NCBI GenBank assembly: GCA_965603825.1
Contig: CBFDEM010000027.1
Coordinates: forward strand, 682,001 to 746,000
From: Blepharisma stoltei ATCC 30299
Taxonomy: Eukaryota > Protista > Ciliophora
Length of the DNA: 64,000 nucleotides
Direction of reading: 5' to 3'
Below are positions 5,754 through 48,229 of the stretch, one piece after another (the first letter of the stretch is position 1; every line of letters starts with the position of its first letter). Position numbers and translations under genes: made by a program. The notes beneath the pieces are model-generated. The model was not told where the DNA came from. It was given only the letters and a program-made list of their open reading frames with translations, and ran no database searches.

Positions 5754-6174
5754 TTTAAGAGATTTTATCTAGGTGAAAACCAAACTGGTGAATTTATTCA
5801 ATTAATATTAAAATTAAATAAAAGTTATATAAAAATTAATGATATGAAATTTAGTTTTTTGGCCTTTCCTAAGCGAATTTAAAATCTTACATGATGTATT
5901 TGACATTATTAGTCACATTTTCTTAAATAAAAAAATAAGATCATTTTATGTATGCTTAAACTAAATTCCATAATATCATTATAGTTTTTAATTTTGAGAT
6001 TAAAATAAAGATATTTAAATTCAAAAATAATTAGATAATTTAAATGTAACAAAATCTAAGGCGTATTAGAAATAATTAAATCATTATCCCTTGCATTAAA
6101 GCCAAATGACTTAATAATTTTATTAATTAAAAATGTGAAGTATTTATTAATCGATAAAAATTAGCTATTAGTGA

Positions 6175-7575
6175 TTATACTTCATCAATTAAAAGTGCAT
6201 TTTTAAGAGGAGGCCGTGTCTCTTCTATAAAAATTGCACATAAGCTTGCAATCAAGTATCCAGACGCAAATAAAGCCAATGCTATTTCTTTTCCATTTTC
6301 TAAATCCAAGATCATCCCACCAATAAAAGGTGATGTTGATGATCCGATTCTTGACCATGTAAAGAAAAACCCCATAGCAGAGTTTCTTATTTCAGCTGGA
6401 TAAATTTCAGGAGAAAGTGTAAATAATGATCCAAAACTTGCTAGATTGACTAATGCAAACATCATAATGACTAGTATCACCTATATAATTTTTACAAGAA
6501 CAATGTGCTCAATAAAAATAAAAAAATATATAGCAAGACTTGTAATAGACATTGATAGCATAAGTGTATATTTTCTTCCAAGCTTTGTGTTTATTAAATA
6601 TGATGCTAAAAACGCGCCTGGGATACCTGATACTTGTTGGATTAATATTATTATATATCTCACTGCAAGAGAAAATTGTCCTAAGAACCTAGGCATGAAT
6701 AAGTTTAGACTAAAGCTTCCAAAGAATGTCATAAAATAAATAACTGATAAAAAAATAGTTGATTTTACATACCTTTTTGAAAAAATAGCTTTAATTCTAA
6801 TAGGCGCTTTTTCGATTTGCTGCTCACTAGCGGATTCTGCAGAATAAATAGTAATTGATAAAGGGCTTTTATTATTAGTTTTTGCTATTTTTGCCAGCAG
6901 CTCTTCAGCTTGTGCATATCTTGCCTTTGATGCTAAGAAAGCAGGGGTTTCATCTAACCCTATTCGAATTATTGACATTAAAATATGGCTAAAAAGTACC
7001 ATTGCTGCCATAAAGCTTCAATCAGACAAATAATTACTACCAATTATTTCAATTGAAATAGCGCAAAGAGCCAAAAATATTCCACCAATAGAAAATCCTG
7101 AGGTCAATTTTGTAACAAAATTAAAATTTTTTGTAGGGCAAAATTCTTTAAAGAGGACTGGATTAATCACCATTTCTCCTGTTCCTCCAAATCCAGAAGC
7201 AAAGCATAAAATTAAAATAACAAAAAGATTGTCAGCAAAAATCCAAACTAAATAAACAAAAATAAATATAATACTTATTTTTTTGATAGATTTTGCTCTT
7301 CCTTGGTGATCAGAGAGATATCCTCAAAAATAAGAGCCAATGAAGCATCCTAATTGAAATAGAGTTCCCATTAAACCTCTTTGAGTATTGCTAGCTCCAT
7401 GCTCGATAGCATAAATAGCCGCAAAATAGGCAATCGAAAGATTTCTTAATTGCACATTAAAATTTGACTAAATAAAAATTACGAGCATGCATTGCCAAAA
7501 AATAGACCAATGGTACTTTCCCCAGCCAATTTCATCTAAATAGTGTGAGACTGCTTGGGTAGATGCTTGCACCAT
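6175..7575 (-). CDS. MFS transporter, SV2/SVOP-like, paralog 5 (456 aa)
   Basis: ATG 7575 to TAA 6175; introns 7468-7482 and 6481-6495; same motifs as paralogs 3 and 4. Confidence 0.92.
6481..6495 (-). other. 15-nt spliceosomal intron
   Basis: GTAAAAATTATATAG; identical to the paralog 4 intron at 4662-4676. Confidence 0.9.
7468..7482 (-). other. 15-nt spliceosomal intron
   Basis: GTAATTTTTATTTAG; conserved position across paralogs. Confidence 0.9.
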
Positions 7576-7856
7576 CTTAGAGAATTTATAAAAATTTTGT
7601 TGACATATTAAATTAATGAGTTATGATTCTAATTTGACGTCATATATAATTTATTTGTATGAGCCGAATAAAAAATTAATTACTGTTGAAAATTTAAAAA
7701 AATTATGAAGTCACCAATCATAAAATAAAGAATATCTAATAGCGTTTAAGTATATCTTGATTTTGAATCCAATAAAATTTGATGAAAAATAAAAATCCTC
7801 ATTAATTATAGGTCAAATATTTAACAAAATCATAGGTGCTTGAAGAAAAAGAGCCA

Positions 7857-8840
7857 ATGATGCTCGCCTTCAAGCGTTTTATGGAAATAGAAAGGGAAGT
7901 CCAAAAACGATTTCAAACTTTTATTCAAAGCTTCGAAGACGACATGCACACATTTTTCCAACAATATCTTCTTCCTCTCTCCGGCGGTAAACTACCTATA
8001 TCCTCAAAACCTATAAGCATTGACCCTCCCAAACCCGAACCTCAGCTCCCTGTCAAACGACCCAAAGAAAATTTTTCCTTTCCTCAATCATCAGCACCAA
8101 AAAAATCTCAGCCACAGCCCAAGCGAGGGGACTCAGAGCTTAATTCTTATATGGAATTATTAAAGTCCAGGGTCAGAGAACTTTATGAAAAAAATATTTC
8201 CCCTTCTTTTATCTCAAAACTTTTCAATCTGAACCTTGAATTAGTCCATTCTTTAGGAAACTGAAAACAAGTCCCTGACGAAATTTCGTCAAAAATGATA
8301 GAAATGAAAAATGAATGTTTAAAACTCAAAGAAAAAGGCTTCACATTAAAAGAAATAGGCAAAACTATAAGAATCCCTAGGAAAAAAGTATTAATTTTAT
8401 TCGGAGAATTAACACCTATTGATTTATTAAAATCTGCTGAATCTAAAAAATGTGTTGTTAATAAAATAGCTGAAGGAGTTTCCAAAATCGCTTTATCACA
8501 AGAACTAGGAACGCCTGTTTACAAAATTCAAAATTGGGTGGATAAAGTTTCTAATGGCAGACCACTCAGTGATGAAGACTCTATTCGTTCTGAAGGCGAA
8601 ATTTCTCGCGAAACCATCCGAAACTCAATTTTTCACTATTATCAAACTAACAACAAAGACCTCGCCGCTTCTATTTGTAGCCAAAAGCCTGAAAAAATAG
8701 TCCAATGGGTAGACAGATTTGAAAATGGGACCGATATTGAAACTATCAAGTTCAAAAAATCCACCCCACAGCCCTTCCCTGAATCCTACGAAAATCTCTC
8801 AAATTCTTTAATTTCTGATTTTTTTAAAAAGTCATATTAA
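7857..8840 (+). CDS. Uncharacterised protein (327 aa) with several helix-turn-helix-like repeats
   Basis: First in-frame ATG at 7857; TGA 8262-8264 read as Trp joins two ORF-track fragments; segments GFTLKEIGKTIRIPRKKV, GVSKIALSQELGTPVYKIQNWV, AASICSQKPEKIVQWVDRFE resemble HTH units. Confidence 0.7.
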
Positions 8841-8856
8841 ATAATAATTTTTATAA

Positions 8857-11262
8857 ATGGAAAGAGCATCCTTAAAAATCTACGTCCGTGTCAAATCTGA
8901 AGAACATAACGACACAATTACAACGTCAAAAGATCTGCATGAAATCAAAATTTCTGACGCACAAGAGCGAGCAAGCCACACTTTTGATTTTTATAGGGTT
9001 TTTTTGCAAGACTCCAATCAAGAAGAAATCTATGATACAACGTGCAGACCGCTGGTAGACCATATGATGGACGGGTTTGACGCCACATTATTTGTGTATG
9101 GACCGACAGATTCTGGGAAAAGTTTTACATTGTTTGGAGGAGAAGGATTCCATAACCGTGGGATGTTTTTAAGAGCGATGGAAACGATTTTTGAAGAGTC
9201 TCAAAGACTGTCTTATCAAAAAGATATCCGAATAAAAATGCAGATGCTGGAGCTTTATGGAGATAAAATTCGCGATTTAGGATTAGCCTATAAAGATGCA
9301 CATGCAATAAATGTTTTCCCGAACCAGCAGCTGGACATTGAAGAAAGTATGGGGAGAGTGATGATTGGCTCAGCTTCAGAGTTTGAGGTTAGGACCCCTG
9401 ATGAAGCTAATGGGGTTGTAAATCAAGGATTTGAATTAAGAGCTGCTTGTGAAGCAAAATCTGGAAAATATTCCACAAGGGCACATACTATTATTGCTAT
9501 CACTTTAAGCCAAAAATATAAAACTGCTGAGTGGGATCAGTTAACAAGCAGCACACTTTACTTTGTAGATTTAGCAGGCTCAGAAAAGCCAAAAACCCGT
9601 AAAGGGAAAGAATTTTACGAGTCATTAAACGCCAGCTCAAGCTTCCACGCTTTAAGCAAAGTTCTTGCTACCTTAAATTCAAGCCAAACTTCATATAGAG
9701 ACCACAAATTGACCAGAATTTTGGAAAACGGAATGTCAAATAACGCTATGATTTCTATGATTGTATGCGTAAACCCAGACAAGGTGCAGTTTGAAGACAC
9801 TTTGGCATCACTTACCTTTGCAGACCGATGCAAGCCACTTACAGCTGGCGGTGCTGCCTTTTTTGCATCTGATAAATTGACAGGAAATGAGGTCGATATG
9901 AAAATAAAATTATTGCAAGACGAAAGAGCTGAACTTAAAGAAAAATTAAGAAAAATCGAAATGACTCAAGAAGAGCAGCTTAAAAAAATCGTGGATATGC
10001 TAGGAATTGAAGGAGATGTAGACACCCTTTTACAGGCACAACCGGGGTCTAGAGAACTTGCTAAAATAAATCAGCAAAAAGAAGCAGTCCAAAAAGTTGA
10101 CAGTTTAATAAAGAAAAATAAAGAACTTGAAAAAAAAGTTGAAGAAAATAAACAAATTTTTGAAAAAATAAAAAAAGCGGAAAATCAAAGCCAAGAGCAG
10201 CATTTGAGGAAAGTTTTGGAGCTGAAAGATGAGCTCGCAAGGCTTAAAGAAGAATTAGAAGAAAATAAAGCAAATGCGGAGCATAATCAAAAGGAGCAGA
10301 TGGATACCAAAGCAGAAGAGTTGCAAAGAATGCTAAGCAATTCGCATAAACTGGTCGAAGAAAAACTTGCTATTGTGCATAATTTGCCTAAAGCAATGCA
10401 GGCAATAGGAAATTTGCCATCAGCTCAAGATATGAAGGAGCTTGGGAAGCTAGAAGTGGAAAAAGAATTTCAAAAAAGATTTAGAGAACAAGAAAGAAAC
10501 CATCAAAAGCAGCTTGAAAGTGTAAAAACACAATATGAGCAGCTTGTTAAAGAGAAAGAAGCAATGCTTTCTAATATGGTCAAAAACTTTAAAGAAAATA
10601 GAAAGACAAAAAAGGACGAAATTTCAGCTTTAAGGAAAGAAATGACGCAGCTGTATGAGCTTATATCAAACCAAAAAAAGGTGCTAAATAATATTGAAAA
10701 TGGGAAATATAATCAAAATTTGAGAAAAGTTTATATTCCAAAAGATATGATGCCTGAATTCCCAACCCCTGAAACTTTTCCTCATCTCTTTAAATCATTT
10801 CAAAGAGAAAAAACAGAAACTAATGTGTCAGCCCACAAACCCGCAACAAAACAAGAAAAATCCGAAATTCAGCCTTCAGGCAGAAAAATCGGAAATTACT
10901 GTTTGATAGCTGATATGTCAACAGTTCCTCCAAATGAAGCAAAAAGGCTTGTAGAAAATCTCCGAGAACTATATAAACAATCTGAAGCTGAGCTAGAAAA
11001 TGCCAAGAAAAACCAATCTTCTATCCAAGAGCAAAAAGCAGCCCTCCAGGAACAAATTAAAAATGCTAAAGAAGAGCGTGACCGATATAGAGAACTTTAT
11101 TCAAAAGAAATGAAGCAAAAATGTGAAGCGAAAAGTATTATCGAAATCCAAAGAAAAACCCTTGAAAAAAATTACCTGCTAAGCAACGAAAGAGGACAGT
11201 CAAGATCTTCAAATGTCAGACCTACAACTGGAGCAAATTTAAGAAGAAATAAAATAGAATAA
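8857..11262 (+). CDS. Kinesin-like protein (N-terminal motor plus long coiled coil, 801 aa)
   Basis: KIYVRVK, FDFYRVF, P-loop YGPTDSGKSFT, FVDLAGSE, YRDHKLTRIL, TLASLTFADR. Confidence 0.93.
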   Translation: MERASLKIYVRVKSEEHNDTITTSKDLHEIKISDAQERASHTFDFYRVFLQDSNQEEIYDTTCRPLVDHMMDGFDATLFVYGPTDSGKSFTLFGGEGFHNRGMFLRAMETIFEESQRLSYQKDIRIKMQMLELYGDKIRDLGLAYKDAHAINVFPNQQLDIEESMGRVMIGSASEFEVRTPDEANGVVNQGFELRAACEAKSGKYSTRAHTIIAITLSQKYKTAEWDQLTSSTLYFVDLAGSEKPKTRKGKEFYESLNASSSFHALSKVLATLNSSQTSYRDHKLTRILENGMSNNAMISMIVCVNPDKVQFEDTLASLTFADRCKPLTAGGAAFFASDKLTGNEVDMKIKLLQDERAELKEKLRKIEMTQEEQLKKIVDMLGIEGDVDTLLQAQPGSRELAKINQQKEAVQKVDSLIKKNKELEKKVEENKQIFEKIKKAENQSQEQHLRKVLELKDELARLKEELEENKANAEHNQKEQMDTKAEELQRMLSNSHKLVEEKLAIVHNLPKAMQAIGNLPSAQDMKELGKLEVEKEFQKRFREQERNHQKQLESVKTQYEQLVKEKEAMLSNMVKNFKENRKTKKDEISALRKEMTQLYELISNQKKVLNNIENGKYNQNLRKVYIPKDMMPEFPTPETFPHLFKSFQREKTETNVSAHKPATKQEKSEIQPSGRKIGNYCLIADMSTVPPNEAKRLVENLRELYKQSEAELENAKKNQSSIQEQKAALQEQIKNAKEERDRYRELYSKEMKQKCEAKSIIEIQRKTLEKNYLLSNERGQSRSSNVRPTTGANLRRNKIE

Positions 11263-33600: not shown

Positions 33601-33937
33601 CTTTTTTAACAAACTTTATTTAAAATATATAAAGGTTTTTCTTTCAATTTGTTTTCGTTTGAAGCTTTTCGTTATAAAAATGCATCATTAAAAAATTACT
33701 CAACAATGGACTATTGACTTCTGCCGCTCTACATCGAGTTCTTTCGAAGTAGCTTGACCCAGGGCTATTTATTTTCTGAATAAAATTTTGTTTTCTCAAA
33801 TAGCCTATACAGTTATGTTTGCTGATAATTTATATCTAGCGTTCACAAGCTTATCAATACAAAAAGGTATTTTGCGATTTTCTCTATTACTAAATTTAAA
33901 CAGTTCGCAAATATGTCCCGCTTTGCCTCTAAATAAA

Positions 33938-35251
33938 ATGTCAAATCCCGCGAAAGGCAGATCTATCAGCTACTCCTACGAATTTCTCGGCTCACGATTT
34001 GAGTCAAAACTCGACTTCACAGCCCAATATTTCAACTTATACCGATCAAGACTCAATGCTTTACATTGGAGATCAATCGATACTGCAAAAGCACAGCGGG
34101 ATGTTCCAATTCTGCACCAAATAATGGAACTAAAGCCAGACAATGTTTGCATAGTCTCAGGCGTCATTGTGAGAAACCATAAAACAAGGCCGTCTATTAT
34201 AGAAAAATATATAGCAAAAGTTGGGACTTTGGAGCCTCGTCCCAGCTGCTTTGGGAGTTTTTGTTCTGAAAAAGACGAAATCTATTTAGAGGACGAAAGC
34301 GGAAGGGTTTTATTGGATTTTAGAAACTCAGAAAGTGACTGAAATGACTTAATTACTGGAATTGTAGTAGCCGCTTATGGAATTTTGCGAGAAAACGCAG
34401 TTTTCGAGACCCTTTCTCTATATTACCCACAAGTAGACAGGCCACTTCCACTAGAAAAAGCAGGTGAGGAGTATATATGCTTTGTATCAGGCTTAGAAAT
34501 TGGTAGTCCTTATTATGATATGATTCTTCTGCATCTCCTAGCTCAATTTATACAAGGGAATTTAGGTACTCAGTCCTATGATGAGGCTAGTAAAATTGTA
34601 AGACTGGTCATTTTGGGTGATTCAATATATAAGCCAGACACAGCCAGGACTGTCGATAGAAAAGCTATAGGTGACCAAGTCATCAGAGGATTTACCGAAA
34701 TTAACGAATCCTTGAAATTTCTTGACACTTTTCTAGCTGAACTAGCAGGGACTATCCCAGTTGACATTATTCCTGGAGAAATGGACCCTTCAAACTGCTC
34801 TTTACCTCAGCAGCCTTTAAATCCTTATTTATTCCCTATAGCAAGCAGATATTCTGCCTTGCAGTCTTTTCCGAATCCTTATGAATTTACTATTGATAAA
34901 TGCAGAATTTTGTGTACGGCTGGACAAAATATTTCTATGTATTCGCATTATGCGCCGCCTGATAAGACTTTTGCTGAGCTTATGGCGCTAAATGTGAAGC
35001 ATAGACATATAGCGGCAAATGCCCCAGATGCACTGCAGTGTATCCCTATGCAGGATAAAGACCCGTTTATTTTGGATAATTTGCCACACTTGTATGTGGT
35101 TGGGAATTTAGGGAGTTATCAGACAGGAATGGAAGATGGGGTTAAACTGGTTGCTGTCCCGAGGTTTTCGAGCCCTGGGCATAATATTGTGCTTGTGAAT
35201 AGGTTTACGTTAGAGTCAAAAACCATATCATTTGAGTCAATGATTGATTAA
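33938..35251 (+). CDS. POLD2: DNA polymerase delta subunit 2 (437 aa)
   Basis: QYFNLYRSRL, YLEDESGRV, LITGIVVA, FVSGL, PGEMDPSNCSLPQQPL, RHIAANAPD, DPFILDNLPHLYVVGN; TGA=Trp at 34340. Confidence 0.95.
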
Positions 35252-35308
35252 TTAATTAAAATCTGATTTATTGCCTTTTATTAAGAAAATTGATAGGATT
35301 TCTGATAA

Positions 35309-38300
35309 TTAAAGCTTAATAATGCTATTAAAATTAGATTTTTGTCTCCGGACGCCGGGGTAGCGTTTCCTTTTAGACTTTTTGTCAATCATGCTCCAAG
35401 CTAGCTCTTCTTCTCATTCTTCTTCTTCATCAGATACAGAATCATTATGATTTACTTCTGAGTGATATCTAATAGTACTTGGAATTGTGGGCTGATCTTC
35501 TAAAGATCTTATTCTTTTGAACTCTAGATCTGTGAAACTTTCAATACGCAGATTAGAGGCGAGTTCTCTTATTTTTGCTGGCAAATTCATGCATTCTTTA
35601 AGCAAATTTGACTCCAAAAGATCTTGAGAAATGCTATTCCCAACATTATAAGGGATCACTTCTTTTCTAGATAAACTTCTATCAAGGCATGCTAAAAGCA
35701 TAGATGCTGATTCAAATGGCTCTAGAGGCTTGATTTCTATTTTCGTATAAGGAGACTTTACACAGACTTGGCGACTTGTAATGACCAAACTTAATTTATA
35801 TACTTTCAATAATTGCTCTATTAAGCTTGAAAACTGATGATTTGCTTCTTTAAGCACCTCGTCACAGTCGTCCAAAATCAGCAAAATATTTTTATTCTTA
35901 AGGCTTTTTTCATTTTTTTCATCTAAAGATACAACCCACCCTTCTCTTTCCAAGCACTCATAAAACTTCGCAAAACTGTTCTGGTCTTTCAAGCTAATCC
36001 AAAACGTCCCATCATTATATATATACCGTGAATTCACAAAGCTCATCAGCTGCTTTGCAAGTCTTGATTTCCCTACACCTTTTTGTCCGACTATATGGAC
36101 GATTTTTTTATCAAAAAGCTCTTGGATAATTTCAAACATAAGCTTATGGCGACCTATTAAATGATTTTTCTTTTTATTTATATTGGTAGGAGGGGTTGGA
36201 TGAGTCATATCTAGAATTCTGCCTGGATTGAGCAAAGATTCGCTTGATAGGATGTTATGAATGGAATTTCTGAATAATGCGACATTGCCGTTGCCTATTA
36301 AAATCGGGCCTTTTCCAAGATAAAGTTTTGGGCGATTTTTTGAGATTCCGCTGAGGTGTTGGAATAAAATTTTGTTTTCACGAATAAAATTATCACTGAT
36401 GTTTTTGCTTTTTTCTCAGGCTGAATATAATGTGTTGCCTTCTATGATAGAAATATAAAAATTTTCGCAGAATAGCTCAATTGCCCTCTCAAACATCATT
36501 TGAAGCTGCACTATATGCTTATAAATAGGAAATTCCTCATAATCAAAGCATAGTATATGGCTTATTCCTAATTGAGTATTTAAATATAGACCAAGTTTTG
36601 CTGAAAACGGCATAGCCAATACTATCAAATCAAGCCCAGGCCTTTCACAGCTTGGACCAAAAAGAAGATCCATCTCAGAAACCCTTATAGGATCTGCATA
36701 AAATCGATTTGTTTCAAGCACAATTGCATCCTTTTGAGGCATATTTGAAGAAAAATGCAAAACTCTGCATCCTTCTTTAATATATTTTTTAAAATTTTCG
36801 CGTGTCCCTATGTCGCTTTTAATGAAAAAACTTTTATTTTTCCTTTGAAGATTTCTAAGCAAGCTTGATTTAAATTCCGCAAAATAGCTTGATATAATAA
36901 AATCCGCCCCATAATGTCCTGTAGCTATATCCACAGTTACCAATGGATAAGCCCTCAGTAATACGATCACATTATTAGTCCTCCTTTTTATCCTGTCAAA
37001 AATTAAATTTAACTTTTCTTTTATTTCAATTTCTTTATTTCTGTCCTTTAGCAATTTTGCGATATCTAGGACTTTCATTCAGACTTCTTCTGCATTTACA
37101 AACATTTCATTGCAAAAATACATTTCCCCTAAAATATAATAATTTATTTCCTCAAGAGCTTTTAAATTAAGCTCGCTGAAAATTTTCCCTGAAAAAGTGA
37201 GAAAATCGATCATTTCTTCATGAAAAACATTAAAAGAATGCGCCCATCTGCAGTAGGCTAAATTAATTCTAGCTAAAACTAGTTTATTGGGCCAGTCATT
37301 TTCTGGTTCACAGTTATTTCTAGCTATTTTAAACAGCTCTTCTATATCCCCAAATCTTAGACTTCCTTTAGATTGTATCGTAGCCATAGCTTTTAATAAA
37401 TAGCACTCAGATAAAGAGTCTTTAATATTCTGTCCTTCAAAATAATGCCTTGCTTTATCGATTTCTTTATTAACCCTTTCTATCCTGATTTCTTTTTCAT
37501 AGGCTAATTTCATTGAACTCCAGGTCAGTCTGAATTTGAAATTCAAAGAATCGTCAATGGCAAAAGCTTTTAAGCACTTTTTGGCACTGTTCAGAACTGC
37601 AAAACCTTCTTTTTTTTTTCTTAATAAAAACAAGGTGCAGATTGTGCATTGGCTGATTTCGAAGATCAAGTTTCCTAGTTTAGGGTGTTTGTAGCTATGA
37701 AAAATTGTTTTAATATTATTTTCATTAATAAATTCCATAAAATTAGCCTTCATGTTTTCAAATAAAACCTGTGGCAGTAGCTTAGAATTAGTGACGCTTG
37801 CAAAAATGTCTTCATCATGGTCTGGGTTTGAATAAAGTTTTCAGGTAGAAACAGGTGATAAAGCATTCGAATTTATCACCGATTTCATTGTAGCTGAACA
37901 TGCTATATTTGGGACTTGACTAATAGCTTCCATTAGAGCTCTAGAAAGGCTTGCCAAATATTCCATACAGATTATAAACATATTTTGTATAGAAGATGGC
38001 TGATTCAGCAGTTCGTGCCTTAAATAGTTTTGGACTTTGTCTGAAACTATCACTATTTCATTTAAAGAGCCGATAAAGGAGTTTTTTCGAGAATTTGAAA
38101 TTTTTGTGGAGTGGCCTGCTGAGAGGAGATTTTCGTTGGAGCTTGAAAATATTTTTTGGCGCTTCATAGGGCTGTCATATCCTTTATAGCTATCATAGTA
38201 AATATTACTATCACTTAGCCTTATTTTTCCAAGCCATTCTTCGCCTTCTTCATACTCTAACAGCTGTAATGCATCATGCCAATGTTTAGTTACCTTAAAG

Positions 38301-40426
38301 CAGATTAGCCCAAGGTGTTCTCGGAAGACTCCTGAAGGAAAAATAGATAGCAAATTGATAATTTCAAAAGATTCAGGCTTCCGATTCCTTAAATACGTCA
38401 ATGATAAATATACAGCCCTACTATCTTCATTTTTCCCTAATATTGTATGGCTGTTTGTGTATTCTTCTATAAATTCATCAACTGTTTTATCTTGCAATAA
38501 AGGCAAACTTTGGAGAAGCTCTGATGGAGACTTTTTAACTACGTTTAACAGCTTGTCCAAATCCTTAGCAATTTTATGACAAATTTCAGGATTTGTATGC
38601 AAAACTTTTAAAGCATTTGATTTCGACATTTCTTTGACCTCAATTTTCGCCTTGTGGTCTGGATCAATAGGCTTTTCACTGACGACCCAAAATTTTAGAA
38701 ATTGTGTCCTTTCTATCAGTGACCGAATTTTGTTTTTCACTTTATCATTGTAATGAGCTAGACTTTCTCCTATATTATCAAGAATAATTAATACGTGCAA
38801 CGAATCAATAATTCTGGCGAGCTCTTCTTTGCTTTTTTCTCAAGAAATATTCAAGCTCTGTGCGATTGTTGTATTTATAGCGCTAGAGTTACATTTTCCT
38901 TGGAGGTCAATATAGATGACACCATGCTTAAAAAGTCGCCGCTCACAGGCATAAATTGAAGCGCTTTTTACAAGCAAAGATTTTCCCATACCAGATTTCC
39001 CATACACAAACACAATTCGGCTGTTTTTTGTTAAGTCTAGCAGCTTCCTAATATCATCACCTCTTCCTATAATTTTCTGTTTTACCAACGGTGGCTTAAA
39101 TTTCAGCTCAAATCCACAGAGTTCTTTTATTTCTGTTTCTTTTCTTCCTGAAAAAAGTACTAAATTCGCCGACTCTTCATCAGCTTTAAGCAGCTTAAAT
39201 TTCATAGCCTCATGATGTGGTACCTCTTGTGAGCAGCAGCAAATGACCCATGACCCTTCCCTAACTTCTGCCTCAGTCGGAATCCTCGTATTATTGAATT
39301 TTATAGTAAATCTTTTTCCCCACTCACAGTCAATCTTATGCCGAGCGTCATAAAGTCTTCTTTCACACCCACAGCTTTCATCAGGACTGTGAGATCTATG
39401 ATTATTACTTCCTTTTCATAAACAATTTCTTTTATGGTTATGGGCACAGCAGCAAGTATTGTGCATGCCAATTTTCACGCTGTTTTTGGCTTCTAAAAAA
39501 GAGTCATTTATAGTTCTGCCCATCAGAAGATTTCGGTAGAAGCTTGAAGAAAATTCAATAGCGGCGTCGTCTAATATTTTGCATTGGTCATGGATTGTGA
39601 TGACACATTTTATGCCAGCTTCTAAAAACACGTTGCCGATTGCTTGGGAAAAGCAGGCACTTACGATTACAATACAAAAATACTGAGAAAAAGGCTCGAG
39701 TATTTTTTTCAGCCTGCTTCTGTCAACTTCGTCGACCATTCCTAAGCATTCACTGTCTTCAAAAGCCAAGACAAATTCATTTGACCTGTTTTTCTTATAA
39801 TAACCATGACAACTTATATGGATAACTTTAGGTTTGCATTCTAAAATTTCGCTTAAATGCTGCAGAGTGGCAGTCTCAAACCGGATTGATGCGTAGATTT
39901 GGTTCCTTTCAAAAGCGTCAAGGATTTTTCGCCTTTCTGCGTTGAAGTCTAAGTTCCAGTTATCGCATTCTTTGACTTTGAAAGCTCCATCTTTCAAAAT
40001 TAATGGTGCAGCATAAAGCATGCATATGTCAATAATCTCGGCATTTCTTTCAGCGACTGGCTCGATTATTTCTTCTACGTTTTTTTGGACAGTTAGGTTT
40101 CATATGTCGTCTTCTATATCAGCGACTCTATAAAGCAAATGGCCGATTTCGCTTTTTTCTGAGTTTTTTATTTGTATCTCAATATCTTCATCGTTACTAA
40201 TATCAATAATAGAATCCTTCTTGAGCTTTCTATATGCGCATATTTCTTGATCATAAATACTGAGTATTGTTTCTTTGTCTACATAAGCTTGATATTCAAT
40301 TAATAGATCCAAAATATCAGTATAGCCTATACAGCTCTGTTGCAAAAATTTCTCTGGGACTGGAAAACCAAATGTTTCGGTTCCTGTGTTTATACTTCCA
40401 ACGTCGTAGGAGTAAAGCACCCACAT
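35309..40426 (-). CDS. CHAT protease - STAND NTPase - TPR-like - inactive CHAT - STAND NTPase protein (1705 aa)
   Basis: One continuous frame from ATG 40426 to TAA 35309 with seven TGA=Trp (40100, 39416, 38840, 37841, 37079, 36416, 35414); HISCHG and VSAC dyad; Walker A GKSGMGKS and GQKGVGKS; Walker B LIILDN and LLILDDCD. Confidence 0.88.
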
Positions 40427-40471
40427 AACATAAAATATTTGGCTATCAAAATTTCATATTTCTTACAAATC

Positions 40472-41605
40472 ATGGGAGGCTGCAACGAGCGTGAGACGGT
40501 TTTTGAAGAAGAATCAGTGCGAGATCTCAGAACGCAAATGGTAATTGAGTACTTAAAGCAACGGAAGCTGATGGTAAAAAATCTTAAAACGCGTAAAAGA
40601 GCTGAAGACACAGAAAGTGCTGATGAAAACAGCACATATTCAGAAGACGAAAATAAATCAGCTGAAATAGCACCAATAGAAAAGCAGGAAACAAAAAGGC
40701 CAAAAATCGAGGAGCAAGATGAAGCAATCGAAGAAGAGCTAATTCAAAAAGTTGAATTTGCTCCAACGAAAATGAAGCAAGAAGCAGAAACTGAAGAAGT
40801 CTTCATAGGAGCTATTGAAATTTCACCTATGAGGCCGAGCTTGGAAATCCAAAATATTCCCTATGTCGCTTCTTTTAGGCCAACAAAAAAGCCACCTGTT
40901 ATAGAAAAAATAATCCAAGACGCCCCACCAAGGCCAAGCTTGGGAATCCAAAAAATCCCTTTAGTGCACTCAATAAAGCCGAAAAAGGCTGAAGAGCTTA
41001 AAATTGAAAATTTTTCAATCCAAACCTCAGTATCCAGACCGTCACTTGGCTTAGAAATTATGCCAATATCCGTTTTTGAGCCAATCAGGGCGACAATTCA
41101 TTCTCCTATAAAAATTGAGGAAATTGCCAAAGAAATAAACCAGCTAGAAGAAAGAGATTTTTCGCCTTTGCCAAATGATAAAAAGCCTAAGTTTAAAAAA
41201 CTTAAAGAAATCTGTGTAGATGACTTATTTGTTTTTCAAGAAGATATAAATGAGCCTTTACAACCTGACATAAAATTCCCTGAAGAAGAAGAGGATATGA
41301 TAATGATAAAAACCCCTGCTATCAAAGTAGAAGCTCCAGCCAAACAAGAAGCAGGCGTAGAGTCCTCAGAAGAACAAGTCATTGATTTCCAATTTTCTCC
41401 AGAAATCCCGTCCAGAGACTCTGAAGAAATCAGTATGAGAGATAGCTACTCCGGCGCCAATGTATTTGTGAAGTCTCGCAAGCGTATTCATATGTTCAGA
41501 GATAACCCGAAACCTTTAACCCCTGAGATGCACAAGCTGAATTTAGAATGCAGGCTTACAATTGATGAAGAAGCCAGGAAATCAATCGAAAAAATGAATA
41601 AGTAA
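40472..41605 (+). CDS. Uncharacterised acidic low-complexity protein (about 377 aa) with three RPSL repeats
   Basis: First ATG 40472; E/K/P/I-rich; RPSLEIQNIP (40832), RPSLGIQKIP (40931), RPSLGLEIMP (41036). Confidence 0.75.
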   Translation: MGGCNERETVFEEESVRDLRTQMVIEYLKQRKLMVKNLKTRKRAEDTESADENSTYSEDENKSAEIAPIEKQETKRPKIEEQDEAIEEELIQKVEFAPTKMKQEAETEEVFIGAIEISPMRPSLEIQNIPYVASFRPTKKPPVIEKIIQDAPPRPSLGIQKIPLVHSIKPKKAEELKIENFSIQTSVSRPSLGLEIMPISVFEPIRATIHSPIKIEEIAKEINQLEERDFSPLPNDKKPKFKKLKEICVDDLFVFQEDINEPLQPDIKFPEEEEDMIMIKTPAIKVEAPAKQEAGVESSEEQVIDFQFSPEIPSRDSEEISMRDSYSGANVFVKSRKRIHMFRDNPKPLTPEMHKLNLECRLTIDEEARKSIEKMNK

Positions 41606-41668
41606 AATTAAAAGTTGAATAATTCTAAAAATGCTTATTTGGGCATAAGTCCATAATTAACCATAAAT

Positions 41669-41917
41669 ATGCAGAACGAGGACAAAAAGATAGTTGATCT
41701 TTACATCCCAAGAAAATGCTCTGCAACCAACAGACTTGTCGGACCTAGCGATTATTCAAGCGTTCAATTAAACATAGCTGATGTGAACGAAGATGGAGTC
41801 GCCCTCAAGACAAACCAAACGTTTTGCATCTCAGGAAGAGTCAGAAGACAAGGATTCGCTGATGGATGTCTTAACAGACTTTTCAAAGAGAAAGGACTTT
41901 TAACTTTCGCTAAGTAG
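41669..41917 (+). CDS. RPS21: 40S ribosomal protein S21 (eS21)
   Basis: MQNEDKKIVDLYIPRKCSATNR...SVQLNIADV. Confidence 0.99.
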   Translation: MQNEDKKIVDLYIPRKCSATNRLVGPSDYSSVQLNIADVNEDGVALKTNQTFCISGRVRRQGFADGCLNRLFKEKGLLTFAK

Positions 41918-42122
41918 TTTAACATCTCCTTCATATAAACTGGCTTATACTAAAGCTCTTATAAGAATTGTTTGAATTTAAGCTGAGTTATGAAACTTTA
42001 TTTCGTAAATATTGAATCATCGTGGTGCCTTAGTTTTCTTAGATTTAATATAAGCTAAAAAAGCTTATTTATGAATTAGTTTAGATGAATTAGGATTTTA
42101 TTCTAATAAATAGGATAATAAA

Positions 42123-43619
42123 TTAATTTTGTGAAAGCTGAAATGCAAACTGTTTGAGGTTTACAGGCTCTCCTATGTAATGCAAAAATAAAATCGAGTT
42201 TGCATGTCGACAAGCTGCAATTTGCTGACTGTCAAGAACTTTGTCAAAATTTACATTAATTTCATGGTACTCCAAGTTAGGGTTTGCCAGCATTATTTCA
42301 TACAAATTAGAATAGTGGCAAAAAAGTGGCCGGATCACGTTTAAATATCACTCTTTTGAGCCTTTTATAGGAGACACATTTAAACGCTTAGTTTTATAAT
42401 CAGCCAAAACATAGTGAAATACCTCAATATCGTGCTCAGGGAAATAAGTTGGTTGGAATTTTTTAGTCTCTTTTTCGTCTGTCACTGATTTAGGAGAGCC
42501 AATAGGAGAACTTGCGACAGACCTCGACTTCCTTATAACTTGCTGTTCAAATGTTCTTAAAAACTTTTCTTTATGTTCATTTACCTCTGGCTTGATGATT
42601 TTTTTTTGGTACTCTTCTTCAAGTTTTTCGAAAATTCCTTTGTCGTCCATTTCTTTACAAACCCTTAAACCTTTATCTACGAACCATGGGTCATAGTCTA
42701 CCGTGCCATCAGTCAAAGCTTGAAGTACAATACATAAAACCCCTGCTTTTACAGCGACTAATGCAATAACTTTTTCTTGTTTTCCATTTTTTATTTTATT
42801 CGTAAGGGTAAATTGCGGGAACGTGTTGGTTCTGATAAACAAAGTATTAGCGTAATACAGCTTCATGACCTCTTTTGTATCACTTTCTGATAGGTTTCCT
42901 ATAATAGTGCACCCTCTATACATAAACATAACTGAAGTAATAACAGCAGATGGGGAATCTAATGTCAAAATCTCATGCACAATAACAGTTTTATCTAAAT
43001 ATAATAAATTCAAACTATCTTGGATATCCATCCTCACCTCAACAGAAACTGGCAGTACAAGAGAACTGCAGCCTAGTGCCAATGGTAAACACACCTGTGG
43101 ATAAATAATCGGAGACGTCGAGAAATCTTCATCTTCATATAGCATATATGGATAAACCTTATAAAACAAACAAATAAAGACCGGATCCAGGGCTTTTTTC
43201 AGCTTGTCATTCATATCAAGCTTAAGCGTCATTAAGTCTCTTTGGCTCATGCGGCCACTTCTGCCACTCCTAGGCGTCCTTTCACTAATAAGCTCATCTG
43301 TTACACATGGAAAATTGTCAGGAAAAGGGTAAATATTTTTTATTCAAAATAAAGCTTCTTTATATACAGACGTAAGAATTGTATCTGAAATTGTAGGAAT
43401 TATTATCGCAAGATAAAAGTTGGGGTATAATAAATCTACTGCCACTTTACAGTTAGGGTATGACAGAATTTGGAAACTCACTATAGGGAATGGGACTGTA
43501 AAAGCAATTGAGGCGTTTAATGGGTAGAGATAGACAGGCTGATCTGGAGAGCGGCTGCTGAGTATGACTGCTACATACTCAGTTGACCCACTTATGCAGC
43601 GACTCATAAAGTCTTCCAT
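42123..43619 (-). CDS. Inturned-like longin-domain protein, no PDZ (498 aa)
   Basis: Single frame with TGA=Trp at 43344 and 42348; FMYRGCTIIGNL, LCIVLQA, DPWFVD, VFHYV and terminal FAFQL recall Inturned longin 2 and 3 blocks. Confidence 0.55.
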
Positions 43620-43899: not shown

Positions 43900-46800
43900 A
43901 TGAGCTTTTACTCTGGCTCTGACGATAATTCTGACTATGGCGGGTTTGAACCGCAGGTCAGCTCAACTCGTAGGTCTTTAAGACAAAGACCTCAAAAGAA
44001 GTAATCAACTACACAGGTACACTGAGATAGACTCTGATAGCGAAGACGAGATAGCAGGTGAAGAGACTTCTGAACTGGAAACCTGACAGGTCTTCCTTAA
44101 TCCACCCATTGACCAAATCCTCGGTTTCTCAAATGAAAAGTACCTCGTCAAATACAAAGACCGCTCATATATCCACCTCAAATGGCTCACTGAGGAGGAA
44201 ATCATTTCCGAGGGTCGCAATGGCAAACTTAAGCTCAATCGCTTCCTGAGGGAACGCATGAATCGACTTCCTGAAGAAGAAGGCAAATTCTTTGACCCAG
44301 CCTTTACAGACGTCGACCGGGTATTATTGACCACAGAAATCTTCCCTGTTGTCCATCCCCGACAGGCAGCTCTCGTAACTGAGCGGTGGCAAGGCAAATG
44401 TGCAGGAATTCTTAGCAAAATTATGAATTTTAGGAGAAATGAATTCTGCTACGCTATACCTTTCTTATACCCTATTGAGCAGTCAGTCAATGGTGGAACT
44501 GAGTATTACAAGAAAGTAAGGTACCCAGTGGACTTTGTAACTATCCATAATCGCTTATACAATGGCTACTACACCTTGCCCATGGAATTTTGGAAAGACT
44601 TGGGCTTTGTCTTTAAAAACTGCCAATTGTTTAACCAAGATAGAGAAGCGGACATCAGGATCATTGGGGACACATTGAGGCAGCTGTCAGTTCACCTTTA
44701 CAAACTCTGGCATGGCAGCACGACTGATGCAGGGCGATACACGCTCAAATGGGTCAGTTTGGTTCCCAATTATGACGTGACCAGTCCAGAGTTTCTTCAA
44801 GTCGATTTAGAAGCTGAAGAATTCACCCAGCAAGACGAAGAAGAAGATTTTAACCTAAATGAGCAGCATTTGTCTCAAGAAGAACTAGCGCAGATACAGC
44901 TGGAAGGGGAGACTGATAAGCTGTTCCTCGTCAAATGGAAAAATTTATCATATAAAGACTCCACATGGGAACCAGAAAGCCTAATCAATAACGCCGCCAA
45001 AATTTCTGATTACTATAGGTTTAACCGTGCATTAGACACACAAGCGCGGCAAGAAATGACTGATTTAAACACAAACTTTACCAAAGTTATGGGCTACCTC
45101 GCTGCAGATGAGGCAAATAAGCGATATAGAGGCTATGGAAATTCACAGTTAATCCATTTATTGGACTCTATAGACTTCCCTACTTTTGATTCAAGGACCC
45201 AAATCCAGCAATTTATTATGTCCCCTGGGTTTAAGGACGGAAAACACCTCAGAGAGTACCAAGTTTTTGGGCTAAATTGGCTGCTTCGAAACTGAAGCGT
45301 CAAAAGAAATAGCATTTTGGCTGACGAAATGGGCTTAGGGAAAACAGTCCAAATTGTAAGTTTTATTAATACACTAGTAAACTCTTATAAATTAAGAGGC
45401 CCGTATCTGGCTATAGCACCCCTTTCGACACTTGCACATTGGAAAAAGACAGTAGAAGACTGGACAATGCTGAACTGTGTGGTTTATCATGACCCGAATG
45501 GCTCAGAAGGCAGAGAATTCTGCAATAAATATGAAAATTATTATATAGACATAATGAAAAGAGGAGGAGTCAGCGAAAAATCAAAACTGGTGAAATTCCA
45601 TATAATGGTCACTTCCTATGAAGTCTTCATGCAAGATTACAACAAATTCTTTGTCGATATCCCATGGCAATTAATTGCTATTGATGAAGCTCATAGGCTG
45701 AAAAACAAACAAGCCAAAATTTTAAGCTTTTTAAGAGAACTTCCTTGTAGGAGATTTGTATTGATGACTGGGACTCCTCTCCAGAATAACACAGAAGAGT
45801 TGTGGTCGCTACTGAATTTTATCCAGCCTCAAGATTTTGCTGACCTTAGTAACTTTTTATCTAAATATGGAAATTTAGAAACAAAAGAGCAAGTCGAGCA
45901 GCTTCAAGAAAACATCAAGCCTTATCTACTCCGAAGGCTCAAAGAAGAAGTAGAAAAGTCAATCCCCCCTCTTCAAGAAACCATTATCGACGTAGAGCTT
46001 ACAAATATTCAAAAAACCTATTATCGTGCCATTTACGAAAGAAACCGTTCTTTCCTATGCAGAGGCACCTTAACACCCCAGCTCACCAATATGGAAATCC
46101 AGCTGCGAAAATGCTGCAACCACCCATATCTAATCAAAGGTGTCGAACAAAGCCATGCTGCAGGACTTATCAGTGATGACGAAAAAATGAAGCGCATGAT
46201 CGAAAGCTCAGGCAAAATGGTCCTCCTCGACAAGCTGCTCCCCAGGCTAAAAGACCAAGGCAAAAAAGTCCTGATTTTTTCTCAATTTACCCAAATGTTG
46301 AATTTAATAGAAGAATACTTACGAATGAAATTTTATAAGTTCGAAAGGCTGGACGGATCAGTCAAGGCTACAGACAGACAAGCTTCTATAGAAAGATTTA
46401 ACACAGAAGAACAAAATATTGACATTTTCTTATTATCAACTAGAGCAGGAGGACTCGGGATTAATTTGACGTCAGCTCAGGTAGTCATTATTTTTGATAG
46501 TGACTGGAACCCTCAGAATGATGTACAAGCTACTGCAAGAGCCCATAGAATTGGCCAAAAACAAGAAGTCCAGGTATACAGGCTGATTACTGCAAGAACT
46601 TATGAAGCAGAAATGTTTGAAAGGGCTTCAAGAAAACTAGGCCTTGACCAAGCTGTGTTTGCAAGAGATAATAAAGCGGAAATTGAAAATCTGCTGAAAT
46701 TTGGAGCTTATAGCATATATGAAGAAGACTCAGGCAGAAGTCAACAGTTCATTGAGTCTAATATTGACCAAATCTTGCAGACCAATACAAGAATAGTTGA

Positions 46801-48229
46801 CTACAATTTAATCAAAAATTCTTATTCCTTTTCCAAAAGTTCTTTTGTGTCGCATGGGTCTGATACCAGTATAAATATAGATGACCCTAATTTTTGGAAT
46901 AAAGTGCTGCCACCACAGACGTCGCTGTCGTCAAGACTATTAACCAAGCTTAATGACCGCAGCTTTACGGTGGAGTCACAAGGAGAAGAATTCATGCAAG
47001 AATTAGAGTTGGCGGTAAATGAGGTCATGGCGTCAAAAACTAATATAGAAACCCATAATATTGAAGAAGAAGAAATTCTGACGTCTTTGCTGTTCCAGGT
47101 TACACAGACCAAACAGTTTGCAAAAGGGACAAGACAGCTGGCGCTGCAGTGGATGAATGAGCTTACAAGGCCTTTAAGAAACCGATCAAGTAGAAATAAG
47201 CCAGATTCTCCACAAATTATGAGCGAAAGTGAAGATGAAAGCGGCGAAGAAAAAAACAGGAAAAAAATCACAAGCTTCGGAGGGACTGGAATCATATGTG
47301 CCCACTGTGAAAAAGAAGGCTGCGGATGAATTTGTGCTGGCCCATGCAAAAGAGGATACCATGACCAATGCAAAGATAAAGAGCTTGACCTAAATCACGA
47401 CTCAAATCTCCCAGAAGATGAAGAAGACAACATAGCTGAACGCTTAGGCTGGAAATGCCACGACTGCACCAAAAACAAAGCTGCCTGCTTTGTATGTGGC
47501 AAAAAAGGACCATTCGCAGGACACCAAAAAGAAGGCAAAAACTACGAAATCGTCGTCAAATGCTCACTTAACAACTGTGGGAAATTTTTCCACCTTTCCT
47601 GCTTAGCAACTAAGCATAAAAAACGCTTCATTTGTCCTTGGCATTACTGTGGGATCTGCAAAGCTTCAGGAAACTCGAAATCCTTACTCCAGTGTTCTCG
47701 CTGTCCTAATGCATTCCACTTACGCTGCTATACCAGAAAAATAGTCCGACTAAACAAAAGGTACATTGTCTGCCACCAACATAAGCAGCCGCAGCGACCA
47801 CCAATTTATCCATCCCATAAAGCCCAGCATAAAGAAAACGTAAAAGCACTAAAAGAAAAACTAAGCGAGCTGTGGAATAAATATAGCCATTTAAGCATAA
47901 CAGAAGAAGAAAAAAAGGCTGGAGAACCAAGGAAAAAGAAAAAAGTCGCCTCAGAAGAGCAAGCTAATGAAATTTACCAGAAATATGGACTGTGTTTACC
48001 AGAGGATTTTGACTACAAAAATTGCAGAGATGAGTGGTGCAGATTCTGTGGGGCGAGGAAGTCAGCTTCTTTTGGACCTGGACCCTGGGGGAAGAAGATG
48101 CTTTGTATGGCACATGCATCTGCTTGGAAAAGCAAAAAAACATTAAATTTGTCAAGTTATAAAGATGTGCCTGAGGTTCCAATTGATTTGTCGAAGAACA
48201 CTGAGCTCAATTATTTGCTAAGGTTATAA
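43900..48229 (+). CDS. CHD-family SNF2 chromatin remodeller with chromodomains, inserted bromodomain, PHD cassette and GATA-like finger (1437 aa)
   Basis: ATG 43900, 16-nt intron 44001-44016, TGA=Trp at 44084, 45293, 47327; ILADEMGLGKT, DEAH, TGTPLQNN, LRKCCNHPYL, STRAGGLGINL, DSDWNPQND, ARAHRIGQ; stop TAA 48227-48229. Confidence 0.93.
44001..44016 (+). other. 16-nt spliceosomal intron
   Basis: GTAATCAACTACACAG; removal joins the ATG 43900 frame to the main CHD frame (RRSLRQRPQKKYTEIDSDSEDE). Confidence 0.8.

Follow-up and report, generated by a model that had tools for sequence, protein, structure and literature searches.

A ciliate protein with tandem CHAT protease–STAND NTPase units, one protease copy predicted live and the other predicted dead

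The stretch of DNA analysed here (64,000 nucleotides, hereafter the window) comes from the ciliate Blepharisma stoltei and corresponds to C27:682001-746000 of a genome of 41,464,486 bases in 64 contigs. On its minus strand, at 35309..40426, lies a real and intact somatic (macronuclear) gene that consists of 1,705 codons and a TAA stop, in which no intron was found, and that encodes one protein of 1,705 residues. The sequence of this CHAT-STAND protein indicates that it is a tandem duplication of a unit made of a CHAT protease and a STAND NTPase, the first unit being apparently live and the second carrying an apparently dead protease. The protein belongs to a family found in several protists. 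The best explanation for these features, in which we place moderate confidence and which draws on analogy with known systems, is that the duplicated CHAT-STAND units form a nucleotide-gated protease that would be activated by assembly.

The reading frame contains seven internal stops, all of which are TGA (codons 109, 337, 529, 862, 1116, 1337 and 1671 of the minus-strand translation, at 40100-40102, 39416-39418, 38840-38842, 37841-37843, 37079-37081, 36416-36418 and 35414-35416 on the minus strand of the window). Under the standard or bacterial code (the table-11 list of open reading frames, ORFs) the 1,705-codon frame is split into eight pieces, and this list reproduces the fragments that a previous, sequence-only reading of this DNA had joined into a single gene with TGA read as tryptophan. 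That joining is upheld by several observations. All of the stops are TGA; five of the seven fall, in a three-way alignment within the same genome, in columns that hold Trp (TGG or TGA) in both paralogs of the gene; and at conserved Trp columns TGG and TGA interchange freely among the three Blepharisma paralogs. With TGA read as Trp the frame holds 13 TGG and seven TGA codons, which brings Trp to a normal level of 1.2%, and the translation is letter-for-letter that of a protein in the public collection (P0152; 1,705 aa), encoded on contig CAJZBQ010000027.1 of NCBI assembly GCA_914767885.1. The macronuclear assembly of Blepharisma stoltei ATCC 30299 (41 Mbp in 64 telomere-to-telomere sequences) has been described as translating UGA as tryptophan and as having introns of 15-16 bp (PMC9942806). 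A scan of the frame for 15-17-nt GTA...AG introns returned chance-like sites only, none of them conserved and none both TAG-ended and compatible with the frame, and the gene is taken here as intronless. The start Met and an N-terminus of the form MW(V/I)xYSYD are common to nearly the entire family, and the frame fills the gap between both flanking genes to within 45-57 bp. The sequence-only reading had called the protein hidden; this does not stand, because the exact 1,705-aa product is already in the public Blepharisma stoltei annotation.

The eight pieces seen under the standard or bacterial code would also be expected of separate genes ending at the TGAs, of a pseudogene or of bacterial contamination, an artefact that we regard as extremely improbable. 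It is contradicted by the interchange of TGA and TGG at conserved Trp columns in three paralogs, by the published UGA code of the species (PMC9942806) and by domains that cross TGAs, as NTPase 1 does at codon 529. It is likewise contradicted by relatives that use the standard code, whose ORFs run to the same length without interruption. A nuclear, eukaryotic origin of the gene is indicated by its neighbours (among them genes for POLD2 and a CHD-type chromatin remodeller) and by inserts resembling internal eliminated sequences (IESs) in another record of the same species. On these grounds, separate genes, a pseudogene and bacterial contamination were all rejected.

The first unit begins with CHAT-1 (residues 129-320; 39467..40042, minus strand), a caspase-like protease core of clan CD. 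The Pfam CHAT family (PF12770) matches residues 163-317 at 51.4 bits against a cut-off of 24 bits (E 1.4e-13). The catalytic His207 (39806-39808) lies in the motif HISCHG (39803-39820) and the catalytic Cys258 (39653-39655) in the motif VSAC, so that the His-Gly and Ser/Asn-Ala-Cys of CHAT proteases (PF12770; MEROPS clan CD) are both present on a caspase-hemoglobinase fold. Pfam match, motifs and fold thus agree with the sequence-only reading, in which a CHAT domain with intact His and Cys had been recognised. No other part of the protein is as conserved as CHAT-1, which, with its catalytic motifs intact, is an active-looking protease.

CHAT-1 is followed by a Cys/His module (residues 321-408; 39203..39466, minus strand) with the pattern CCCxHxHKxxC ... 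HxxHxPxCxC ... HKxxC ... CCCxPxxPH. The module contains 10 Cys and eight His, counted over 92 residues, and 16 of these positions (C325, C326, C327, H329, H331, C335, H343, H346, C352, C354, H363, C367, C396-398 and H404) are invariant or nearly so in 29 family members, a family-wide constancy that substantiates the module noted from the sequence. It is covered by no Pfam family and would probably bind zinc. An AlphaFold model of residues 1-460 was built from 29 family sequences (mean predicted local distance difference test score, pLDDT, 82). Alignments of this model with CHAT folds extend from residue ~131 to residue ~431 with only ~190 residues aligned, and the module is directly followed by a strand with near-invariant K409-F410 (KFxL, residues 409-414). 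For these reasons the Cys/His module appears to interrupt the CHAT-1 fold just ahead of its last strand.

The second protease copy, CHAT-2 (residues 1117-1336; 36419..37078, minus strand), is a predicted pseudo-protease with a caspase/CHAT fold. It escapes simple searches: pairwise BLAST of CHAT-1 against CHAT-2 (fragments 2 and 6 of the standard-code list) was not significant (E 0.17), and a Pfam scan left fragment 6 unmatched. Comparison of family alignments with hhalign, using 22 sequences for the CHAT-1 region (A1) and 20 for the CHAT-2 region (A2), gave a match of 172 columns between the two, with a probability of 99.5% and E 1.8e-22; the CHAT-1 query also matches a second region in the relatives, and a fold search returned a caspase-like fold for CHAT-2. 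It is through this profile-profile comparison and fold search, and not through Pfam or BLAST, that the second CHAT-like domain of the sequence-only reading is confirmed. CHAT-2 accordingly has CHAT homology and a caspase-like fold and lacks the catalytic dyad: the position of the catalytic Cys is an invariant Pro (LAMPFS), and that of the catalytic His (VLHFSS-N) is a gap or Asn in 20 of the 20 aligned members. The loss of both catalytic residues in all 20 members marks CHAT-2 as a conserved pseudo-protease.

Each CHAT domain is paired with a STAND NTPase. NTPase 1 (residues 451-640; 38507..39076, minus strand) has the motif IIGR, a Walker A motif GKSGMGKS (38978-39001) and the Walker B motif LIILDN. 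Pfam AAA_16 matches the fragment (fragment 3) at 32.9 bits (cut-off 32.6) and the whole protein at 57.5 bits over both NTPases, and the matches of NTPase 1 to NB-ARC and NACHT are partial and below threshold. NTPase 2 (residues 1421-1650; 35477..36166, minus strand) is NB-ARC-like, with LIGR, the Walker A motif GQKGVGKS (36065-36088), the Walker B motif LLILDDCD, VITSR, and CMNLP at the position where the family has a GxP-type motif. It is matched by Pfam NB-ARC (PF00931) at 36.8 bits (cut-off 23.5) over model positions 4-225 of 248, and by Pfam NACHT (PF05729) at 35.4 bits (cut-off 26.7); in the genome-wide search the NB-ARC match lies at C27:717486-718142, which is 35486-36142 of the window. 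In profile searches of the PDB, the matches of both NTPases, at 1e-5 to 1e-7, are to AAA+ clamp loaders, to Cdc6 proteins and to the NB-ARC domains of plant NLRs. They include RFC5 (2.5e-7) and the plant NLR Roq1 (1.8e-6, profile positions 8-270, 263 positions in all) for NTPase 1, and plant NLRs of the ADR1 and NRG1 types (~1.5e-5) for NTPase 2. Neither a winged helix nor an MHD motif was recognised behind the nucleotide-binding domains, in parts that were not folded. With NB-ARC, NACHT and AAA_16 all above their cut-offs, the two STAND-type NTPases predicted from sequence are well founded, and a Pfam scan of the full protein agrees with that of the fragments between TGAs. The positions that the sequence-only reading had assigned to the Walker A motifs and to the catalytic His and Cys of CHAT-1, like those of its other motifs, are exact, and the profile and structure searches that it had proposed returned matches to both the CHAT/caspase fold and STAND.

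Between the two units lies a helical region of 476 residues (641-1116; 37079..38506, minus strand), TPR-like in its C-terminal half and containing a poorly conserved stretch at ~741-860. Neither this region nor any other part of the protein matches a Pfam repeat, and the region has no Pfam match of any kind. The ten best named clusters among its language-model (Atlas) features are all TPR (top 0.96), its profile finds TTC29 (1.7e-4) and a designed repeat protein (1.3e-4) weakly in the PDB, and the paralog P0001 has a sub-threshold TPR_1 match. The earlier description of this region as TPR-like therefore stands as far as its helical, TPR-like features go, with scores that are weak throughout and no Pfam repeat behind them. 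The region sits between the two units and not at the C-terminus, as it would in the NLR architecture, and no repeat domain follows NTPase 2. The protein ends in a tail (residues 1651-1705; 35312..35476, minus strand) with an acidic run, DEEEEWEEE, and then a basic KKSKRKR; the tail is the least conserved part, and acidic-then-basic tails are also found in the paralogs.

At the other end, residues 1-92 (40151..40426, minus strand) form an N-terminal domain for which a beta-grasp (ubiquitin-like) fold is predicted. In a fold search its closest solved relatives are DIX-type polymerising domains, the nearest likeness being to the head-to-tail polymerising DIX/SOSEKI domains of Dishevelled, Axin, Ccd1 and plant SOK. 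This likeness, seen in the model, is one of fold only and does not extend to membership by sequence profile: none of 28 family N-termini matched any Pfam family at E up to 5, and a PDB sequence search gave no match to DIX (PF00778). The N-terminal domain, the Cys/His module and the tail are all without a match in sequence searches of Pfam, NCBIfam and the PDB. The domain is followed by a long, coiled-coil-like helix (residues 93-118; 40073..40150, minus strand; assigned by DSSP on the model as H93-118), for which GCN4, trimeric coiled coils and bZIP come up as weak matches in profile searches, and then by a low-confidence linker (residues 118-128) leading into CHAT-1.

The genome encodes two further members of the family, on C16 (1,705 codons, six TGA) and C43 (1,702 codons, 12 TGA). 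These paralogs appear in NCBI as 'unnamed protein product [Blepharisma stoltei]' and in UniRef as 'CHAT domain-containing protein' and 'AAA+ ATPase domain-containing protein'. Pfam finds CHAT and NB-ARC nowhere in the genome except in these three genes, and four of the genome's 11 NACHT matches lie within them. Together these counts suggest that the STAND repertoire is very small for a eukaryotic genome of 41 Mb. Outside the three genes, NACHT-type matches exceed the Pfam cut-off at C63:108805-109341, C53:502669-502953, C53:1349606-1349887, C27:232815-233255 and C62:198535-198858, and a weaker pair on C50 and C57 does not reach it. Comparison of the paralogs gives a ratio of non-synonymous to synonymous substitution rates (dN/dS) of 0.066 overall, 0.023 for CHAT-1 and 0.043 for the TPR-like part, with a range of 0.02-0.25 across domains; these values are rough, since dS is saturated at ~2, which also makes the paralogs old. 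By this measure every domain, the dead CHAT-2 included, is under apparently strong purifying selection.

Beyond Blepharisma, the CHAT fragment was compared by phmmer with 1.84 billion representatives, which returned 1,984 matches at E up to 0.001, of which 28 were below 1e-30. Many of the best matches are 1,600-2,000 residues long and have CHAT in the corresponding place, and the order CHAT, NTPase 1, NTPase 2 is found in all six of the relatives scanned. The full-length protist relatives share 33-40% identity over the whole protein. The six that were scanned use the standard code, have no in-frame TGA and possess uninterrupted ORFs of the same length, and their contigs are gene-dense and eukaryotic, encoding Arf, a Miro-type GTPase, a mitochondrial carrier, cyclin, TRAPPC10, RabGAP and kinases. 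The architecture search in other protists that had been proposed from the sequence alone thus recovers the same domain order, in eukaryote-like metagenome contigs. A shorter relative occurs in Stentor coeruleus (SteCoe_35861; 1,114 aa) with the N-terminal domain, CHAT, NTPase 1 and part of the helical region. Its gene occupies 6001-9345 of MPUH01001569.1 and ends 138 bp from the end of the contig; the shortness of the protein may be a natural truncation or an effect of the assembly or of a chromosome end. A more distant clade, that of P0025, lies on a contig of 56% GC and includes proteins from EukProt transcriptomes; at least one family member, P0169, appears in a Trinity assembly of transcripts as one long protein. 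Because this clade is GC-rich and includes EukProt proteins, the family probably extends beyond heterotrich ciliates. Another distant relative, the EukProt protein P0031 (2,333 aa), has precomputed Pfam matches to an RNA-recognition motif (PF00076), CHAT and NACHT/NB-ARC, and is matched by the CHAT query in two places.

The family can be set against several known systems. NLRs that carry a CHAT domain at their head and activate gasdermins have been documented in fungi and bacteria (PMC10197012, PMC12881547). The effector-STAND design with a CHAT head is consequently not the novelty that the sequence-only reading had supposed. In these fungal CHAT-NLRs and bacterial gasdermin-associated CHAT/STAND proteases, CHAT forms one chain with a NACHT/NB-ARC NTPase and TPR-type repeats, which makes the protease part of the receptor; the Blepharisma protein shares this direct fusion, with a region that is TPR-like on weak scores. 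The Blepharisma protein differs from them in its dead second CHAT, second NTPase, invariant Cys/His insert and beta-grasp N-terminus, and also in its ciliate host and in forming a small, conserved set of genes and not a variable one. SAVED-CHAT (PDB 8TL0) and the TPR-CHAT Csx29 of type III-E CRISPR (Craspase) are, unlike the Blepharisma gene, prokaryotic and without a STAND NTPase, and their activators, cyclic oligoadenylate or target RNA, act by way of SAVED or Cas7-11. Sequence similarity to SAVED-CHAT is marginal (E 0.018; PADLOC SAVED_CHAT 8.6e-4), and PADLOC gave weak matches only (mad8, PDC-S01 and SAVED_CHAT). The bacterial Avs family models in PADLOC found no match, and the gene is nuclear and eukaryotic, outside the prokaryotic defence context of that family.

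Another comparison is with the apoptosome, in which an NB-ARC-type switch (Apaf-1 or CED-4) likewise governs a clan CD protease (caspase-9 or CED-3), there by induced proximity. The motif order of NTPase 2 (P-loop, hhhhDD, hhhTSR, GxP-like) is that of NB-ARC. Unlike Apaf-1 and CED-4, however, the CHAT-STAND protein unites protease and switch in one polypeptide, has no CARD or other death fold, contains two NTPases and has a TPR-like region between its units in place of WD40. In separase a pseudo-protease directly abuts the active protease domain and there is no P-loop NTPase, whereas ~800 residues and an NTPase separate the live and dead protease domains here; separase structures (PDB 5U1T, 5MZ6 and 5FC2) are among the fold matches. 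Literature searches combining CHAT with ciliates, Stentor or protist NLRs found nothing relevant, and CHAT, NB-ARC and NACHT are not mentioned in the Blepharisma genome paper or its supplement (PMC9942806). The literature searched yielded no account of the double live/dead unit, the invariant Cys/His insert or the DIX-like head of this protist family.

The switch that we favour is modelled on the apoptosome, on fungal and bacterial CHAT-NLRs and on SAVED-CHAT filaments. A signal read by the TPR-like region, the dead module or both would release autoinhibition; nucleotide binding or exchange would then lead to oligomerisation, perhaps aided by the N-terminal beta-grasp domain and coiled coil; and the clustered CHAT-1 domains would become active and cut a substrate. 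Regulation would fall to the dead unit and the TPR-like region. What the analysis establishes is the gene with its genetic code, domains and catalytic motifs, the duplication, the conservation and the family; ligand gating, oligomerisation, protease activity, zinc binding and a biological role are what we infer. Several observations weigh against such a switch. The Walker B motif of NTPase 1 is D-N and not DD or DE, and its Asp is absent in some relatives, so that NTPase 1 may bind nucleotide without hydrolysing it. The TPR assignment is a weak one, given its scores, and the dN/dS values share the roughness that saturation imposes. Prediction of a complex between CHAT-1 and CHAT-2 gave no support for contact and speaks neither for nor against an intramolecular pseudo-dimer. 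Finally, in a metagenomic subgroup (P0015, P0018, P0022, P0023 and P0026) CHAT-1 has Gln for the catalytic His and has lost the Cys while the full architecture is kept; both protease copies are therefore dead in these proteins, and protease activity is not essential for every member of the family.

This last point, together with the fact that one CHAT copy is dead in all members, is what would be expected if the protein were mainly an ATPase scaffold in which the protease fold serves as a binding module and catalysis is dispensable. Such a scaffold seems improbable to us, because His-Gly and Ser-Ala-Cys are intact in the gene studied, in its two paralogs and in most relatives, and CHAT-1 is the part under the tightest conservation. 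Another possibility is an innate-immune receptor of the NLR/Avs type, whose repeat region would directly sense a molecule of a pathogen or symbiont and so bring about protease-driven death of the cell or nucleus. The order effector-STAND-repeat is present, with the TPR-like region as the apparent repeat, CHAT-STAND proteins of fungi and bacteria have a part in death and defence that depend on gasdermin, and the weak PADLOC matches comprise SAVED_CHAT and two NTPase models that are defence candidates. Against this, the three copies are the only CHAT and NB-ARC matches of the genome and have undergone no lineage-specific expansion, purifying selection is strong in all domains with the TPR-like region included, the full-length protist relatives keep their 33-40% identity throughout, and no Avs model matches. 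No gasdermin partner was found near the gene, and a Pfam search of the genome for gasdermin (PF04598) gave no match, which says little since control genomes were equally silent. We consider an immune receptor unlikely. A diversifying repertoire of pathogen receptors accords somewhat less well with the low copy number, the strong constraint and the conservation between species than does a conserved task of the cell. The same machine could serve an internal task in development or the cell cycle, such as destruction of the old macronucleus in conjugation, encystment or regeneration, in a manner like separase or the apoptosome. We treat this as a possibility to be held with some doubt, since neither the genome paper nor its supplement mentions CHAT or these genes and nothing links the gene to any process.

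A bolder form of the nucleotide-gated, assembly-activated protease can also be envisaged, namely an independent protist counterpart of the apoptosome or inflammasome. In such a machine the dead unit would control the live unit in cis, a DIX-like head-to-tail polymer and not a death fold would drive assembly, and the zinc module by the active-site cleft would set the choice of substrate. Taken whole, this proposal is speculative and we give it little credence; if true, it would describe a previously unrecognised eukaryotic signalling machine whose origin was independent of animal, plant and fungal NLRs. In animals, fungi and bacteria, regulated proteolysis by caspase-like enzymes under STAND switches underlies both immunity and the death of cells, and it is little understood in free-living protists. 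The family described here unites protease and switch in one conserved polypeptide that also carries its own dead protease copy, an invariant module of metal type and a head that may polymerise. Its importance is less than the sequence-only reading had held: the gene is publicly annotated, CHAT-NLR fusions are known in fungi and bacteria, and the role proposed here is predicted only. RNA interference by feeding works in Stentor. Both Blepharisma, with three full-length genes, and Stentor, with its shorter relative, can be cultured in the laboratory, which would make a ciliate switch resembling the apoptosome or inflammasome directly testable.

The genes flanking the CHAT-STAND gene are eukaryotic. 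The small subunit of DNA polymerase delta (POLD2; 33815-35251, plus strand), with OB-fold and subunit B domains and one in-frame TGA, is convergent with it, leaving 57 bp between the stop codons. On the other side a 377-codon ORF without a Pfam match (40472-41605, plus strand) is divergent from it, with 45 bp between the starts. Further on lie a 498-codon ORF (42123-43619, minus strand), also without a Pfam match, and a gene of 1,323 codons for a CHD-type chromatin remodeller (44258-48229, plus strand) that has a bromodomain, a chromodomain, an SNF2 helicase and NSD-type PHD fingers and reads through two TGAs. A squalene/phytoene-synthase-like gene is also among the neighbours in the window. 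Three flanking genes (the two upstream ORFs and POLD2) do not recur beside the paralogs or at the loci of the four relatives searched, and no operon-like partner emerged.

The public record that encodes P0152 differs from the window in this region. Compared with 34441-41926 of the window, CAJZBQ010000027.1:914051-924549 (reversed) holds 11 extra segments of 63-478 bp, mostly AT-rich, within the CHAT-STAND coding sequence, and a further extra segment of 632 bp lies in the neighbouring POLD2 gene. Such segments are as expected for germline-limited IESs, which are absent from the somatic genome. Two of the inserts (387 and 380 bp) have common CTCCCCCC...GGGAG ends and resemble the IESs of the miniature inverted-repeat transposable element (MITE) type that have been described for Blepharisma.

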